From positions 1,054,001 through 1,118,000 of the forward strand of contig NEEC01000014.1 in NCBI GenBank assembly GCA_002189035.1: a stretch of DNA of 64,000 nt, in the 5' to 3' direction. The stretch's first letter is position 1, and each line of letters starts with the position of its first letter. Made by a program: the position numbers and the translations under genes. Shown here one piece after another: positions 6,378-61,416 of the stretch. The stretch comes from Utricularia gibba. Its lineage: Eukaryota > Plantae > Magnoliophyta. The notes under the pieces were generated by a model, which saw only the letters and a program-made list of their open reading frames with translations, made no database searches and was not told the DNA's origin.

Positions 6378-7948
6378 ATGGCGTGTAGGCGCCTCGCGGC
6401 GGTGGGTTCACGCGTGGGAAGGGGAATGGGGTTTTCCGGTTCATCTTCCATTGGACTCGCGGCGACGGTTACCCATTTGCTTAGTTTTTCAACCAGAGGG
6501 GAGAAAGCGGAAATCGACAATCGTGGTGAATTGCTGTCCATTGTAGAGAATTTGTACGAACATCGCAGCTGGAAATTCCTGACTCAAAATTTTAGGTCAG
6601 TCAAGTTTTCGGACCCTATGATTCAATATATACTCTTGCAGCTGAAGGAACCGATTAATTCAAGGAAAGCCCTGAATTTCTTCCACTGGTGCGCGAAAGG
6701 AATGGGTTTGGAGCATGGGTATCAACGTATTCCATTATGATCCATATTCTGGCTAAAGCCAGGCTTGTTAAGGATGCCAGGATATTGCTTGAATCTGTTC
6801 TGAACAAAAATATTTTCCCTGATGGAGATTCTAAAGTTTTTGTTGTTTTGAATGCTTTACTTGATACGTATAATGTAGCAGATTCGGTTCCATTTGTTTT
6901 TGACTTGTTTGTGCAAACCTATGCGAAGTTAAGAATGTCTGATGATGTTCTTGCCGCTTGTAAGTTGCTGTCTGATCATGGTTTTATGTTAAGTGTGATT
7001 AGTTTCAATACATTGCTACATGTGACAGAGAAATCCAGCAACGTCGACCTGGCATGGAGAGTGTATGAGCATATGATCATTTGTAGGATATGCCCGAATG
7101 AAGTGACCATCAGAATCATGGTGGATGCATTATGCAAGAGCGGAAATTTAGAGAAGTTTCGTAATCTTGTCTCTAAGATGCACGGGAATAGATGTTCAGT
7201 ACCTGTGGTGATTGTGAATACTTTTTTGATCTATGAACTGATAAGAATGAATAGGATTGAAGAAGGGGTGAGATTATTGAGGTGGATGATGCAAAAAAAT
7301 ATGATCTTGGATAATATATCTTGTTCCTTGGTCGTGTTTGCCAAGATGAAGATGGGGGATTTTGCTGCTGCTCAAGATATTCATGATCAAATGCTTAAAA
7401 GAGGTTTTCCAGAGAATGCTTTCGTGTGCAGTCTATACATCGAGACTTACAGTGATAACGGAAGGATGGATGAGGCATTTGGGCTATTGGAGCAGATGGG
7501 GAAACTGCGATTGAGTCCAACAGAAGAAGCAATGAATAAGCTCTTCAAAGGTTGCTCGCGTATGCCCTTGGACAGTGGGGTCTTATATTGCAAGAGAATA
7601 GTAGAGCAGCAGCAGTTTGTTCCTAGTTGCTCAGCAGTGAATGAGATGTTTGAGAAGCTTTGTGAAAACGGGAAGACGAAGGATGCTGATGAGATAATGA
7701 CCAGTTTGTTGGATAAGGGATTCAAGCCTGATGAAAACACCTACTCCCATCTTGTTTGTGGCTATGGCAAAGAAGGCAAAACTGAAATGTTCCTGAAGCT
7801 TCTGTACGAGATGAAGCACCATCTAGGCATTCCGGTTTTGACTTCAATCGTTTCAAGACTCTCTGGCTATGGCCGTCTGGAAGAAGCAAAGAAATATGTT
7901 GAAGTAATGCAACCATGCCCTTCCCCTGTCACAGTGGAAAGGCGTTGA
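6378..7948 (+). CDS. P-type pentatricopeptide repeat protein, mitochondrial (At1g66345/MISF26-like), with a one-base frameshift at 6717-6719
   Basis: Overlapping ORFs 6378-6740 (Arg/Ser-rich presequence, ALNFFHW) and 6689-7948 (STYSIMIHILAKARL, VFDLFVQTYAK, PNEVTIRIMVDALCK, PDENTYSHLV). Adding one G at GGG restores EHGVSTYSIMIH. No intron. Confidence 0.85.
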
Positions 7949-13270: not shown

Positions 13271-15725
13271 ATGAGCTTACTTGAAGATTGTGAAGAAGAA
13301 AATTTTTTTTTATTGAGAGACATCATTCACACACATGATCCAGATGATCGTTGGCTCGATACGGAGCTACTGCTGCACCTGGTGGAAAGAACTTTATGCT
13401 CCATCATGAAAGATGAACCTGTCTGTTGGTGTCGTTGATTTTGAACTGTTTGTTTTCAATACGGCCGTCTCTGAAGCTTCTCCTGTTTTTCATCAGGCAA
13501 ACGGGTTGCAAGCTGATGCAGTCGAAATTGATCTGGTGGGATCCCAGAAGCCAATTTCACTAGTGATGAACAGGTTATCCGCTGAGGTAACTAGACTTCT
13601 CCTTTACAGCCGTACAGCCGCTGTTTCTTTTTTCTGGTTGAATCGAAAATTGGAGTCTTTGTTTGCTAGATGCTCCATGGGCAGTGTTCTGTGGAAGACA
13701 ATACACACATGAAAACACTGGCCTTACTCCAAATCCTCAGTCAATATGAGTGGGAGGCAAAGATGGTTCTTGCACTTGGTTCCTTTGCTTCTATTTTTGG
13801 ATCGTTTCGTCTCATACAGAGGCTGCAAACTGGTAATGATTTGGGATTACTCCTTGCAAAAATGATGCAAATCCCCATGGCTCTGGATACCCTTAATCCA
13901 AAGATGAAGGCTATGGACATGCTGGTAAAAACCATGGTGACGCTCTCAAAGAAAGTAGTAAGTTTCCAAGATATGCATTGGCTCGATGAGTATTTAGACG
14001 GAAAAGTTGCAATCTTTTCCAAGTCGAAGATTGTCATAGCTACTTATTGGATGTTGAAGAGCATACTGGAGTGCTCGAATCAGCTTCGAGATTTCAGGAT
14101 CTCGAATATTGAGCAAGTGCATGTTCTTTCTCTTCCCAAACTGCCTGTTAAATCTCCCTTGTTGCGTTTCAGCTTTCTGATCCAATGACACTCTACAGGC
14201 ATTGTGATAGAGCCGTGGGATCAGCTTGGAAACTCCACAGTTTAGGAAGTAAGCTCAACAGCTTGGAGAACGAAATCGGAGCATATATAAACAAATATCA
14301 GAAGCTGATAGGTATCTTTGTATCAGCAAAGTTAGTTTTTTTTCATTGTTCTGAGTTCAATACCGACTGGCAGAGACAAAGTTGCACAAGAAGCTGGAGA
14401 CTATGTACAATGAGAAACAAGTTGACAACCAGAATGCCCTGAGCAGCTTATTTCCTTCAAGGAATCAATTCCCTCTCAAGAAACTCTCCACAGGGGATAA
14501 GGTGGTTCTTTGTTATTCTTCTTGCAAACTGACTTTGGTTCTTTGTCAGTGACTTAGTTTTGTGTCCTTGTCACTTCCTGACAGTGTGGATTCATAGATC
14601 TAAAAGATATGGTTGTAATAATCTTAATCTCAAAACCTGAGCTGCTACCCTTGGAGAAGCTGTTCTTGTTGATGCAAAGGATTTCTCCTCATTCACAACC
14701 AGAAAAGCTTGCTGTACTCTGGGTTCCCATCTCATCTTCGAATGAATGGAGCCGAATCGATAGAGAAAATTTCAACTTCTTCTCAAATCACTTGACATGG
14801 TTTGCCATCAGAAGGCCATGGTCTCTGAATCCATTCACTCTGAACTTCATCAGACGAGAGTGGAAGTTCAATGAGGAACCCATGATGATCATATTGAATG
14901 AAAATGGGGTGATAACCAACACAGATGCTACCAGCATGATTTGGTTATGGGGATCAAAAGGGTATCCGTTTTCATCTTCAAGAGAAAAGGATCTCTTGGA
15001 TACAGATTCCGGTGCTTTTGATATCATTATTGATGGAATCAGCCCTTTGTTAGCTAAGTGGGTAGGCATCTTCACCTTTTCTTCACGCAGTTCATTCATA
15101 TTTTCTTGAACTGAACTCAAGGAACTTTGATCTTTCACTGTGCTAGTTAACTGATGGCAAAACCCTCTGCTTATATGGGAGTCAGAACCTAGACTGGGCC
15201 ATCAGATTCAGTGCAGGTTTAAAGAGGATACCGAGTTCCAAATTCGAGCTCCATGGCGTATACGTTGGATCCAAGAACAATGCTGAACGAACCAGAGCCA
15301 TTGCAGAGCTCATCACTACAGAAAACTTAAGCCTCTGCTTACCTTCAGCCATGGCGCATTTGTTCTGGCTCCAGTTATCTATACTCGCGAACACGTTCCG
15401 CCATGGAACCCGATCGAAACTAGCGAACAAGCTGACAGAGCTGCTAGACTACAACGAGAACTGGGTTATCATAGGAAACTCACAATACGCAGCAACACTT
15501 GATGACGAACAGATCAATTGTTTGGTGGAGGGAATTCCTTTACATGTGCCGGAGATCGGCTTGACGGGTGCGACTGGAGGCGCGGTTGAGCCTCCGTCCG
15601 ACAGAAAAGCTTGCTGCTTTGAACAAGTTGTTCCTTATGAAAACGGACTCATCGGAAAAACCGCAACATGCAGCTCCTGCAAACGCCCCATGGTGAAGTT
15701 CGTCGTGTTCAAATGTGAAGGATGA
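13271..15725 (+). CDS. SEOC: SIEVE ELEMENT OCCLUSION C-type protein
   Basis: Exons 13271-13420, 13497-13586, 13670-14112, 14199-14311, 14374-14501, 14585-15061, 15147-15725. Motifs HTHDPDDRWLDTE, YEWEAKMVLALGSFA, WFAIRRPW, MIWLWGSKGYPF, and C-terminal zinc-type motif CSSCKRPMVKFVVFKCE. ATG 13265 is an alternative start. Confidence 0.88.
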
Positions 15726-21182: not shown

Positions 21183-22881
21183 ATGTTACGAGAGGAAGAG
21201 AAAGATTCAGCATCTGGTGGGAGTTGGAAGACATATTCTAGATCGATGTCATGGACAGAATGTCCGCCGCGGAAGTTGAGCTCTAAGCCTCTATGGAACA
21301 GCAAGGCCAGGGCGTGTTTGCCTCCTCTGCAGCCTCTGAGCATCGTCCGGCCCAGTGTAGAAGAATGGCCTAAACCTGGCTCTGATGATACCGGCATATG
21401 GACAGCTCCTCCTACTCCAACTGCTGTTTATCTCGGGTCTGTAGCCTCTTGTGAGACATCGACTTCAGCTGTGCCTTCGAAAGACAGGCATGTTTCATTC
21501 AATAAAGAATGCTCCAAAGTTTTGGATCATGTGTATGTGGGATGTAATTCTGTGGCCAAGGATCGAGAGATGCTTCACCAGAATAGGATTACACATGTAC
21601 TGAACTGTGTCGGCTACTCCTATCCAGAATATTTCAAGAATGAGTTAGTGTACAAGACACTTTGGCTGCAGGACAGCCCATCTGAGGATATAACAAGCGT
21701 GCTCTATGATGTGTTTGATTATTTTGAGGAGATTCTGGAACACGGAGGCCGTGTGCTTGTTCATTGCTGCCGGGGTGTTTCACGTTCAACTTCACTGGTA
21801 ACAGCAGATGAGCTTTTCTGATGCCTTCCAACAAGTGAAAGCAGCTAGAAGAGTGGCTGATCCTAACGTTGGCTTTGCCTGCCAACTTATGCAATGGCAG
21901 AAGCGTGTGCATGCATTGCCTCCCAGCCCAAACTCATCCCTCCGAATCTACAGGATGGCACCTCACTCACCTTATGATCCTCTTCATATCGTACCAAAGA
22001 TGGTGTGTGAACCAGGTAAAGATAATACACTTGATTCTCGCGGTGCATTCCTTGTTATAATTCCTTCAGCTATATTTATTTGGATTGGAAAACAATGCCC
22101 ACAACTGATGTCAGAGGGTGCCATGAGAGCTGCCAACCAAGCCATTCGATATGAAAGGGCTGAGGGCCGAGCGGTAACTGTTAAAGAAAAAGAAGAGACT
22201 TTGGAGTTTTGGGATGCTTTCGGTTTTAGAAAAGGTTTAGATGGCATCTGGGGTGTAACATCTGAAAAGGAAACAAGGCCTGCGCCAGGATCTAATGTGG
22301 AAGCTGAATGCTTGGCTCAAAGGAAAGTGGACAAGTATGATTCAGATTTTGAAGTCTTTTGGAATGCGCTTGCTGGTGGAGTGATTCCTCCTTTATTATC
22401 TGGAGCAGAACCTGAGATATGCGTTCCTGCTAGAGAGAGCAGATGGGCTGCGTCAAGAGAGAAGCTTGTTTCAGATGATGTCATGGCCCCTTTGGAAGTG
22501 AACCCAAGACAGACCAAGATGGATGCTATCCCAGAGACACACGAGAATAAGGGACTTGATGACACTTCATCCACTCCAGATGTTTGTAGATCTTCAAGGT
22601 CTCAAGGGGGGTCACCCAATTCATCAGCTTCGTATCTTACCTGCAGCTCAAGCTGGTCCAATGACAAGATAAAAGAACCAGAATTCCCCATTAATTTGTT
22701 TTCCCGGTCTCCTTCCTTTAGTTTGGTAGAGTCATTCTCTTCGATTTATCTCCCAAAGCACCATTCAAGCTCACCAGCATCGTCGGTTTCATCTTCAACG
22801 CCCGATTATTCAAGTCCATTCACTTTCTCTCCCTCATCATCTAATTGCTCTGACTCATCTCCTGCTTCTTCATCTCCTTAA
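21183..22881 (+). pseudogene. MKP1: MAP kinase phosphatase 1-like dual-specificity phosphatase with gelsolin-like domain, disrupted as written
   Basis: ORF 21183-21821 (KARACLPPLQPL, KECSKVLDHVY, WLQDSPSEDIT, catalytic VHCCRGVSRS) and out-of-frame ORF 21808-22881 (DAFQQVKAAR, MAPHSPYDPLH, LDSRGAF). The AYLMW segment expected between them is missing. May be a real lesion or an assembly error. Confidence 0.75.
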
Positions 22882-57678: not shown

Positions 57679-58942
57679 CAATACAAAGCTCCCAAAAACA
57701 GCTCATCTGAGAACAACAGAAGCTATGATTCCAAGAATCTTTCAGCTACCCCCGTGGCACATCATAAAAAAGAGACCAGAAGACATTGCATTGAAACCTC
57801 CAGATTTCGGGAAGAATGCAAGTCGAAATGGATCAAGAAATGACGATCCGCGAAGACCGGTGTCAGCGTTTGGACATGAAGTAAACTTCCCGTCAGATTT
57901 CCATGGATTTAGAAGAAAACCAGATGACCAGGCCTGACCCGGTCGTTTTCTATGGACCTAAAGCCCACCTTCTATGACCCAGCGTAGGCCCAGCCCTAGG
58001 GGATTATGGGTCCAAAGGGTTTGACCATAACTGATAATTCCCTCCCAACAATACAATTAAATTGTAATTGAATAGCTTAAGATCGCGAGATATCCCTAAC
58101 AATAGTTAGTTAAAATCATACCTGTTTAAAATAGAAAAAAATAAAAATACGTTTCAATGATGATTTAATAATTATTCAATTTGATATCAGAAAAAAACGA
58201 ATTTTTCAATTTCCAATCGCCTAAATCATGGAACTAGAAGTTAAAACTGGCAAGAGTTTTTCATCTTTCTTTTTTAAGAATAGTTGTGGATTGACATTTT
58301 TTAAATTAACAATTAGATGACTTAAGTGAACAAATGTAAAATCAAGGTATATAAAAAACATTAAAAAAATTATATTCAATCGATTATTAATAATTTATAA
58401 GTTATTATATATGTTACGATTTTATTTTCAATTCTCAATTTTTGGTTTTTATTGTAATGTCATGATAGACCTAATATTTAATTCGGTTAAACTTTATTTA
58501 TTTTTTTATAATTGTAAATAATGCTCTAATTATAGATTGATATGATTTTTGTCACATAATCTCAATGTATCTCTTTATTTTTTAACTTAAAGTTAGATAA
58601 TATGAGATACATCTTGACCACTCAAATTATATAATAAGTAAAACATTTTGATGTCATGTTGAAATTAAGAATTCAATGAATCAGATAAATACATGTAAAA
58701 TATAAATACATAATAAATATAAATCATATTATAAAAAATTAAATCTAATTGATCAATAGTAATTTGTTATATAATAATTATTTAACTCTAAGTTTCAATG
58801 CAAGATTCTTTATTATAACGGGTACGACTAGGTTTTCACATTTGATTTATGAAAGTGAACAGTGATAACCCACCCACTTAACTCTTTAACCGAAAACACG
58901 ATGTGTTTCACGCAGGCGCACAGCCGTCGAGGACTTAAAACT

Positions 58943-59205
58943 CTAGTGTCGATTGTGAATGGGATCAGGCCCTCTTTGAACCCTCCTTTTGCTGGAGCTG
59001 CTCGCATCGAACTCGCTGCCCTGAGTAGAACGATCTGTTCCCTCGTTGCCCCGGAGCGGTACGCACTCCGCGTCCGCAACGGCCTCCGATGGCAGTCCTG
59101 CCGGTCGACCGGCGCCGTCATGGTGACCAGGCCTCGGACTGTGGAAAGGGCTAAGCAAGCGAAGAAGAGGAAGAGTGCCATGTGACAGCAGTTGCGCGCG
59201 ATCAT
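58943..59205 (-). CDS. CLE45: CLE (CLAVATA3/ESR) peptide precursor, CLE45-type, split by a frameshift
   Basis: Signal-peptide-like MALFLFFACLALSTVRG in one frame (ATG 59205 or 59181). C-terminal SSSKRRVQRGPDPIHNRH* in the adjacent frame, 12-mer at 58952-58987. One added G at 59049-59052 joins them into about 87 aa. Confidence 0.8.
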
Positions 59206-60421
59206 CTTGTGGGTGGGGATATCGGTAGCCTTTCCACTGCGCTTCGATCCAGGCGCAAAAGCCCTCATAAGGACTCACAGGAGAATCCAGTGAATTGCGT
59301 TCAATCGTATCAGCGCAAATTGCAGCATAAGAATGTCAGAGGAAGAATAAAGATGGCTGGAACAAAACCCTCATGAAGTTAAGCATCTTTTCATTTTTTT
59401 TTTCAATGCGTTTATTTCAACTAATAATAGTAATAATTGCAAAACAAAATATGTAAATAATTGATTATTTTAAAAAAACATAAATTGTGAAGAAAATTAA
59501 ATGAAATTCAAAATATTTAAGAGAAAATGTCTTTTTTTCAAAAAAGAAAAAGAAGGAAATTTTTTTGATGAACCTTTCTGGTATGGTAAAGATTCCTTTC
59601 ATGGTTATGAGCCTTTCCATTCATGGGAGCAAATCATATATTTGTCTAAATAAGGGAGACAAATGCTATTCCTCACATCTGGAAGGACTAAATAGCAAAT
59701 TCTATGAACTATAAAAAAATCACTACAAAGTTTATTTTATTTTCCAATCTCTATTCCCACTGTTAGTCCCATGATCAATCCCTTCATACATTTTCCACTA
59801 GAATATATTTATTATATTTATATTCAATTTTATTTTAACCCTACCATTTAAAACTCATTATCAATTTAATTTTTCAGCTTTGATTCATAAAATTATTTTT
59901 AATCTATTTTCACTCAATGAATTCAAAATGCGATTTTTGAAATGGTTATTATTTCTAATTTTAGGTTAAAATAAAATATTTTTAATCTATTAAAACTTTT
60001 TTTACTTTGAAAATAAAATAATTAATTTTATAAATATGTAAACTCTAATAGATAATTCTCAATTTAAAAAAAATTTAAATAAATATGTACAATCATTTAA
60101 TAAGTAATTTTAAAAAATAATGAAAATATATTAATTAATTTAATATTTTGAAATTCATACCCTATGGGGGAGAAACGTGAGGGTTTGAATTATGAGGTAA
60201 AATACAGTGGAATGTTGGTTTCGTTGTCCATCAGAGGATCTGACACCCAAAACAAACTTGCAACAATGTGGATAGTTTCCGGTGACCACCCGAATCCGAA
60301 CCAGAGAAGGAGGCCATTAATAGCAAGAGTGAGATCTCCGGCAGCGGTAGTAGTAGTAGTAGGTGATGGGTAGCTCCATCTGAACGACAACGACGTCACA
60401 GTGAGAAATAACAGCTTCCGG

Positions 60422-61416
60422 TTACTCTTCTCTCCTGCTTCGTCTGGAGGTCCCTCCATCTCCATGTCTTTCGTTCTGGGGAACCTCCACGCCCAGAAAG
60501 TCGATGAATGGCGGTGGAGGGGCGGAGGCACCGGAAGGGTTGAATGGGAGGATCCTGTGTTGCGCAGAGAGGGTCTGGTTCTGGGTGTGCACGCGTAGTT
60601 CTCCTCCTCCTTCTGCTGCTGTCTCCGGGAATAATGATGATGACCTTCCCCACGTGTGGTACTGGGCTCCTGTGATGATCACGATGACGTGGGTTCGGTG
60701 AGGAGGGTAATAATGATAATTGGGTCCGGAGATGAGAGAAGGCATACCGGGGAAGAAAGCGAGCGGGGGCGGAGGCCAGAATTCGACGGGGTTTCGTTGT
60801 GGGGATGTGTTGTCGGAGACGTAGTGCTGGCCGAATTTTCTTCTTCTGTTGGCGGAAGAAGATTGCTGCTGCTCGCGGTATTTTCTCGCCATGACCACGT
60901 GCCAATGATTCTTCACGGCGTTGTCGGTTCTTCCCGGAAACAGCCGCGCGATCATCGCCCATTTGTTGCCGTACAGCCGGTGCGCCGCCATCAGCTTCTC
61001 CTCCTCGTCGTCGGTGAAGGCCCTCCTATTTATCCGAGGATCCAGCTGGTTGAACCACCGCAGCCGGCAGCTTTTCCCTTCCAAAACCAACAAACAGACG
61101 CCTCAGCAGATGCCTTCCATCACCGGAGAGAAACACTATAATGTAGATGTAATACTAAGTCACCTGATCTCCCCTGAAGCTTCTCCGCAATGAGATTCCA
61201 GTTCTGGGGTCCGTAAGTGGCAACAAGCTCCTTCAGCTTCAAGTCCTCCACGGGCTTCCAATGCCCTCTACAGCACATCTTGCTAAACTGCTGCTGCTGC
61301 GGCACCAACCCTTCAGCTTCTTCATTCAGATCAAGCCCCCATCTCTTCAACACGTAGCTCCTCCTGCTACTAGTATCAGTAGAAGAAGAATCCGCAGCAT
61401 TGCTCGCAAAGGCCAT
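60422..61416 (-). CDS. R2R3-MYB transcription factor, subgroup 21 (MYB105/MYB117 LOF-like)
   Basis: Exons 61164-61416 and 60422-61077. [16 protein letters not shown]...[49 protein letters not shown], and near-C-terminal PPFIDFLGV. Confidence 0.92.

Follow-up and report, generated by a model that had tools for sequence, protein, structure and literature searches.

A phloem-type CLE signalling-peptide precursor gene with a one-base break in its reading frame in the bladderwort Utricularia gibba

The phloem-type group of CLE peptides ending in DPIHN comprises CLE25, CLE26, CLE33 and CLE45, and the CLE33/CLE45 peptides are ligands of the receptor BAM3 that repress the differentiation of the protophloem. 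True CLE45 has been reported from the Brassicales only, CLE33 being the older gene; neither position 4 nor position 7 is occupied by proline in any of the CLE33/45 orthologues, and a proline swapped into either of these positions of CLE33 leads to a BAM3-independent root response (Carbonnel et al. 2023, PMC10244433). The published 12-residue peptides that served for the comparison include those of Arabidopsis AtCLE45 (RRVRRGSDPIHN), tomato SlCLE24 (RRVKRGSDPIHN) and SlCLE7 (RKVRKGSDPIHN), and sesame SiCLE5 (RKVRRGSDPIHN), together with AtCLE26 (RKVPRGPDPIHN), AtCLE25 (RKVPNGPDPIHN) and the CLE25-type peptide RRVPNGPDPIHN, which occurs in tomato, sesame and poplar. The corresponding genes are of variable size and organization. 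SlCLE24 and SlCLE7 consist of 285 bp and 252 bp, respectively (PMC9670457), and the SiCLE5 precursor of 94 aa; SiCLE2 and SiCLE4 of sesame possess one intron each and encode 106-133 aa, SiCLE10 encodes 122 aa, and the tomato loci SlCLE6 and SlCLE19 span 1.5-2.5 kb (PMC9670457), which implies the presence of an intron. Tomato also offers a precedent for CLE genes with a disturbed reading frame, since the apparent frameshift of SlCLE31 was a one-nucleotide error of the assembly SL4.0 and Sanger sequencing revealed an intact gene, and 5 pseudogenes, i.e., about 9%, occur among the 57 CLE candidates of this species (PMC9670457).

The bladderwort locus is located in the window, i.e., the whole stretch of 64,000 nucleotides of Utricularia gibba DNA that was analysed. 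With a GC content of 42%, a gene roughly every 4 kb and introns 70-95 nt long, the window is in keeping with a very small genome of the Lamiales. The original prediction described a CLE gene split on the minus strand between two frames one base apart, with the signal peptide in frame A and the CLE motif in frame B, and all of its details, including the run of four G at 59049-59052, were found again. Frame A starts with the ATG at 59205 and reads M-IARNCCH-MALFLFFACLALSTVRG..., and frame B, offset by one base, opens at 59278, contains no ATG among its 111 open codons and ends with ...SEFDASSSSKRRVQRGPDPIHNRH followed by the TAG stop at 58945-58943 (C-terminal read-out ...KRRVQRGPDPIHNRH-stop, 58943). 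As assembled, no continuous small ORF (<150 aa) joins the signal peptide to the CLE motif, which are one base out of frame. Exactly one extra base is required at the A to B junction, and its addition restores, as had been foreseen, an ordinary single-exon CLE precursor of 87 aa. An ORF-based annotator would indeed overlook such a gene. The features of the locus are as follows:

59206..59268, minus strand: stretch of 63 nt from a possible in-frame upstream ATG (59268), the use of which would extend the product by 21 hydrophilic residues
59131..59205, minus strand: start codon and signal peptide (25 residues, frame A), recognized from its charge, hydrophobic core and cleavage-site residues
59053..59130, minus strand: variable region in frame A, with a third-position GC of 0.87-0.93 up to about 59060
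59019..59052, minus strand: zone of the frame break, comprising three G runs as candidate sites; 87 aa result from the addition of a G to any one of them
58988..59018, minus strand: last residues of the variable region (..SEFDASSSSK, frame B), read from the sequence
58952..58987, minus strand: 12-residue CLE peptide RRVQRGPDPIHN, read from the sequence and by motif comparison
58943..58951, minus strand: two-residue tail (R-H) and TAG stop, read from the sequence
58809..58814, minus strand: AATAAA, candidate polyadenylation signal about 130 nt past the stop, read from the sequence

Taken together, these features identify the locus as a genuine CLE signalling-peptide precursor gene, the reading frame of which is interrupted by the lack of a single base. 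In the repaired precursor, the signal peptide is followed by a variable region, about 47 residues long, and by the 12-mer RRVQRGPDPIHN, with two further residues as a tail. The secretion signal was called from hydropathy and cleavage-site residues: a positively charged N-terminal region precedes the hydrophobic core LFLFFACLAL, with Kyte-Doolittle means of 2.0-2.9 over 9 residues, and V-R-G occupies positions -3 to -1, with small residues at -3/-1. In the corresponding segment 59131..59205, the GC content at the third codon position reaches 0.87 in frame A. The 63 nt that precede the start codon probably correspond to a 5' leader, since the extension of 21 residues would bury the signal peptide. 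All of the residues expected of a CLE peptide near a stop codon (R1, G6, D/N8, P9, H11 and N/H12) occur in the 12-mer, with the stop two codons further. The CLE-type pattern R-x4-G-[PS]-[DN]-P-[ILV]-H-[NH] has a single match in the window, all six frames considered, and none in 300 shuffles, and this match is preceded by K-R, at the end of the ORF and 170 nt beyond a canonical signal peptide. The whole unit of 263 bp has a GC content of 60%, and the surrounding DNA one of 26-35%.

Three G runs, namely the G4 at 59049-59052 and the two GGG at 59040-42 and 59019-21, mend the frame equally well, and the signal peptide, the CLE peptide and the length of 87 aa remain unchanged whichever of them receives the added G. 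The G4 originally proposed as the site of the shift is therefore present and suitable, and shares this property with both GGG runs. The third-position GC, high in frame A (0.87-0.93) from the ATG to about 59060, subsequently shifts to frame B. Under a two-state likelihood model, reading the whole unit in frame B falls 13.6 log units below the best split model, and the shift is optimally placed around 59022, within a broad support interval extending from 59089 to 58946.

With respect to the origin of the break, the consensus of the long-read assembly is probably in error, one of the G runs located between 59052 and 59019 having lost a G. The explanation that best accounts for the whole, an intact single-exon phloem-type CLE gene in the plant whose break is an artefact of the assembly, is accordingly regarded as the likely one. 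It is favoured by the occurrence of just one lesion, which is one base short, by the G runs located in the permitted zone, by an undecayed codon periodicity, and by a perfect signal peptide and motif. No second lesion was found in the CLE unit and signs of decay are absent, the periodicity being sharp in frame A upstream and in frame B downstream, and both the motif and the stop being kept. In addition, another gene of the window shows the same type of break:

6378-7948, plus strand: PPR gene of about 530 aa, split into ORFs of 120 aa and 419 aa, with one base missing at GGG 6717-6719

This gene reads ...ALNFFHWCAKGMGLEHG in one frame and VSTYSIMIHILAKARLV... in the next frame, right after the GGG at 6717-6719, and the conserved N-terminal PPR motif ..FFHWCAKGMGLEHG / VSTYSIMIHIL.. 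spans the break. The same one-base-short signature as in the CLE gene supports the assembly artefact, and two such events at G runs occur among the approximately sixteen genes of the window. The frameshift-free long ORFs found elsewhere in the window amount to about 6.5 kb, which indicates that its error rate is not extreme; the overlapping open frames that require one base more or one base less (61 versus 55) are uninformative. The bladderwort gene resembles SlCLE31 as it appears in SL4.0, in that an indel of one nucleotide, in an assembly of the long-read era, gives a CLE gene the look of a pseudogene. It differs from SlCLE31, where an inserted base was involved and was cleared experimentally, by a missing base known from the assembled sequence alone. 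More generally, apparent pseudogenes of this assembly may correspond to one-base homopolymer errors, and claims of gene loss in this rootless plant need checks at the level of the reads.

A real frameshift, which would mean that the CLE gene was very recently inactivated, or that a null allele was captured, in a rootless carnivore that no longer needs a phloem or root-meristem signal, is considered less likely. Utricularia gibba has no roots, and rootlessness could relax the selection on a root-protophloem signal. The break stands in the assembled sequence, uncontradicted by any independent sequence, and the coding sequence of the window is mostly frame-intact; no protein of the locus, either intact or broken, occurs among about 15 billion predicted proteins; the compact locus of Genlisea aurea lacks a CLE motif; pseudogenes are a regular part of the tomato CLE complement, in the proportion quoted above; and the PPR gene of the window could also carry a true lesion. 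Against a real frameshift, however, the sole lesion of the CLE gene is one base short with G runs at hand, a type of lesion it shares with the PPR gene, and the motif, the position of the stop and the codon periodicity have all been kept. The lack of a database match is moreover expected, as the proteins of the species itself are largely missing from the collection. More doubtful still is the particular scenario in which the frameshift would reflect that a CLE33/45-like "phloem brake" was recently lost, in parallel with the CLE-less block of the rootless Genlisea aurea. If true, the Lentibulariaceae would be shedding a root-protophloem signalling module together with their roots.

It is very improbable that the gene is intact just as assembled, with the two frames linked by a short intron or by some other non-standard route such as an upstream exon or recoding. 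A compensating splice, the absence of which had been tied in the original prediction to a pseudogene, was looked for among the GT and AG dinucleotides of the interval. Short introns of 70-95 nt are typical of this genome, the CLE25-type genes of sesame and tomato have an intron, and 22 GT..AG pairs restore the frame between A and B. None of them is credible, since all exhibit a GC content of 61-73% and depart from the splice consensus, with GTCCGA, GTCACC, GTCGAC, GTTGCG or GTACCG as the donor and a pyrimidine tract absent from all of the candidates. In contrast, the real introns inspected in the MYB, receptor-like kinase, sieve-element-occlusion, trehalose-phosphate synthase and DUF616 genes of the window are AT-rich, measure 70-95 nt and follow the canonical GT[AG]AG..YAG. 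The spliced products would in addition comprise merely 44-72 aa, and frame B, besides its lack of an ATG, has no coding periodicity in its upstream part.

The weakest explanation, the chance vicinity of a signal-peptide-like ORF and a CLE-like 12-mer outside of any gene, agrees with the lack of a Pfam match and of a homologue by sequence search but is hardly tenable in view of the unique motif placed after K-R at an ORF end, of the discrete GC-rich island with codon periodicity, of the CLE_plant indication of the ESM Atlas, and of the well-known ability of CLE precursors, in which some 12 residues alone are conserved, to escape sequence searches. In this respect, the nearest cluster of the frame-B fragment in the ESM Atlas carries PF27922 CLE_plant (score 0.90, 173 shared features), to be taken as a lead only. 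A local copy of the Pfam-A profiles assigned no family to either frame, even at E up to 10, and HMMER gave no match among 1.84 billion representatives at E up to 0.001. The word-indexed protein search returned one unscored candidate for the end of frame B; exact look-ups of the 146-aa frame-A ORF and of the neighbouring PPR retrieved no record, and metagenome scans with a protein query and with a DNA pattern in which two of the runs could take up the additional base yielded no match. These blanks say little, because the proteins of the species itself are largely absent from the collections: the best matches of the neighbouring intronless PPR gene come from Lamiales, namely Paulownia (71%), and Sesamum and Buddleja (both 69%), none being closer.

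Concerning the subgroup, the locus falls within the phloem-type DPIHN group (CLE25/26/33/45), where it is intermediate between CLE33/45 and CLE25/26 and should not be named "CLE45". The 12-mer RRVQRGPDPIHN scores 10/12 against each of AtCLE45, AtCLE26, SlCLE24 and the CLE25-type RRVPNGPDPIHN, which results in a four-way tie. The peptide fails one hallmark of each subgroup, since its Gln4 is CLE33/45-like (no Pro4) and departs from the Pro4 of CLE25/26, but its Pro7 is CLE25/26-like and departs from the Pro7-less state of CLE33/45. The original statement that the peptide is closest to CLE45 thus retains the identity of 10/12, the Gln4 and the short intronless gene, and loses its exclusivity to the tie, to the Pro7 that breaks the CLE33/45 hallmark, and to the restriction of CLE45 to the Brassicales.

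Likeness to the CLE33/45 group resides in the absence of Pro4, in Arg5, in the DPIHN end and in the identity to AtCLE45 and SlCLE24. It also extends to the precursor, as Ser-Ser-Lys stands ahead of the motif as in SiCLE5 of sesame (SSK-RKVRRGSDPIHN), and to the gene itself, which is short and devoid of introns (about 260-285 bp, 83-94 aa). Unlike the described CLE33/45 orthologues, which are all non-Pro7, the bladderwort peptide possesses Pro7; it has Gln4 where the group exhibits a basic residue or Gly, and the assembled bladderwort copy, unlike the CLE33/45 genes, is out of frame. With the CLE25/CLE26 group, it shares an identical GPDPIHN end, in agreement with the CLE25-like end recognized from the outset, as well as the identity to AtCLE26 and to RRVPNGPDPIHN, and a single CCA-to-CAA change would convert the peptide RRVPRGPDPIHN into the bladderwort 12-mer. 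The near-universal Pro4 of that group is absent from the peptide, however, and the asterid CLE25-type genes are longer than the bladderwort gene, a single exon of 264 bp with no credible intron. The gene architecture therefore leans towards CLE33/45 rather than CLE25/26.

No paper dealing with the 12-mer or with other DPIHN variants lacking the Pro4/Pro7 arrangement was found in the open literature searched, nor any paper connecting Utricularia with these CLE genes. With reference to that literature, the 12-mer is a new but minor peptide variant, and the gene, which is unannotated, represents a new member of a well-known family, with a peptide that is slightly unusual, to be added to the compact genome of a carnivorous plant.

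By analogy with the other members of the family, the precursor would be secreted and the 12-mer freed after the K-R site, with subsequent trimming of the C-terminus. The peptide would then be perceived by receptor kinases of the CLV1/BAM type together with CLV2/CRN, and the resulting signal may restrain the differentiation of the phloem or of the meristem. The suggestion that the Q4/P7 combination could alter receptor preference is consistent with the BAM3-independent response elicited by CLE33 upon introduction of Pro4 or Pro7 (PMC10244433). On the basis of these Arabidopsis swaps and of the presence of Pro7, perception of the bladderwort peptide is predicted to extend beyond BAM3, to which it is probably not confined. 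As the swaps tie both positions to BAM3 specificity, a natural variant without Pro4 but with Pro7 represents a ready-made test peptide.

The CLE gene has a MYB gene as its upstream neighbour:

60422..61416, minus strand: R2R3-MYB gene of the LOF/MYB105/117/CSA-like group, 1.2 kb upstream of the CLE gene, recognized from its ORFs, a visible intron and the names of its homologues

The homologues retrieved with the exons searched singly are annotated as MYB105, MYB117-like, CSA-like and myb-like protein Q. In Arabidopsis, CLE45 corresponds to AT1G69588 and the LOF genes to At1g69560, which we take to be MYB105 in particular, and At1g26780. Judging from the gene codes, CLE45 adjoins there a LOF-type MYB (At1g69560), as the bladderwort gene does. 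The predicted CLE45-MYB105 neighbourhood agrees with the gene codes of Arabidopsis and with the MYB gene located 1.2 kb away in the window, but it did not reappear in other plants: a CLE motif was found within 10 kb of the MYB105/117-like genes at none of seven other plant loci (Salvia divinorum, S. hispanica, Genlisea aurea, Sesamum indicum in two assemblies, Datura stramonium, Hibiscus trionum and Perilla frutescens), for which a flank of 10 kb may be too short. The locus around the PPR orthologue contains no CLE either. When the PPR-orthologue and MYB loci were compared to the window by tblastn, the anchor genes alone matched, i.e., the MYB itself at the MYB loci.

A Dof gene comes after the MYB in Sesamum, Solyc05g007870 (MYB117) adjoins Solyc05g007880 (SlCDF2) in tomato, and a MYB-CC gene comes next in Hibiscus and Genlisea. 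The Genlisea aurea contig KE526936.1 (208-10801) comprises MYB, MYB-CC, RINGv, ZF-HD, RPL34, cullin and Kelch genes and no CLE motif, in an order that is presumably collinear with the Arabidopsis block At1g69560-At1g69670, where CLE45 sits. Conservation of the block around the MYB is partial. SlCLE7 of tomato (chr5:2.20 Mb) may lie near Solyc05g007870, and a conserved MYB-CLE synteny is plausible.

Another gene of the window relates to the phloem:

13410-15725, plus strand: sieve-element-occlusion (SEO) gene with SEO_N and SEO_C domains and canonical short introns, recognized from its domains and introns

This phloem structural gene is located 45 kb from the CLE gene and its presence is regarded as coincidental. 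Additional frameshifts were suspected in the SEO, trehalose-phosphate synthase and DUF616 genes, and all turned out on inspection to be ordinary introns. At 21183-22881 of the plus strand, a dual-specificity phosphatase domain stops at profile position 93/133 at the end of its ORF, and the next long ORF lies in another frame with an overlap of 17 nt and no G/C run; this change of frame probably corresponds to an intron.
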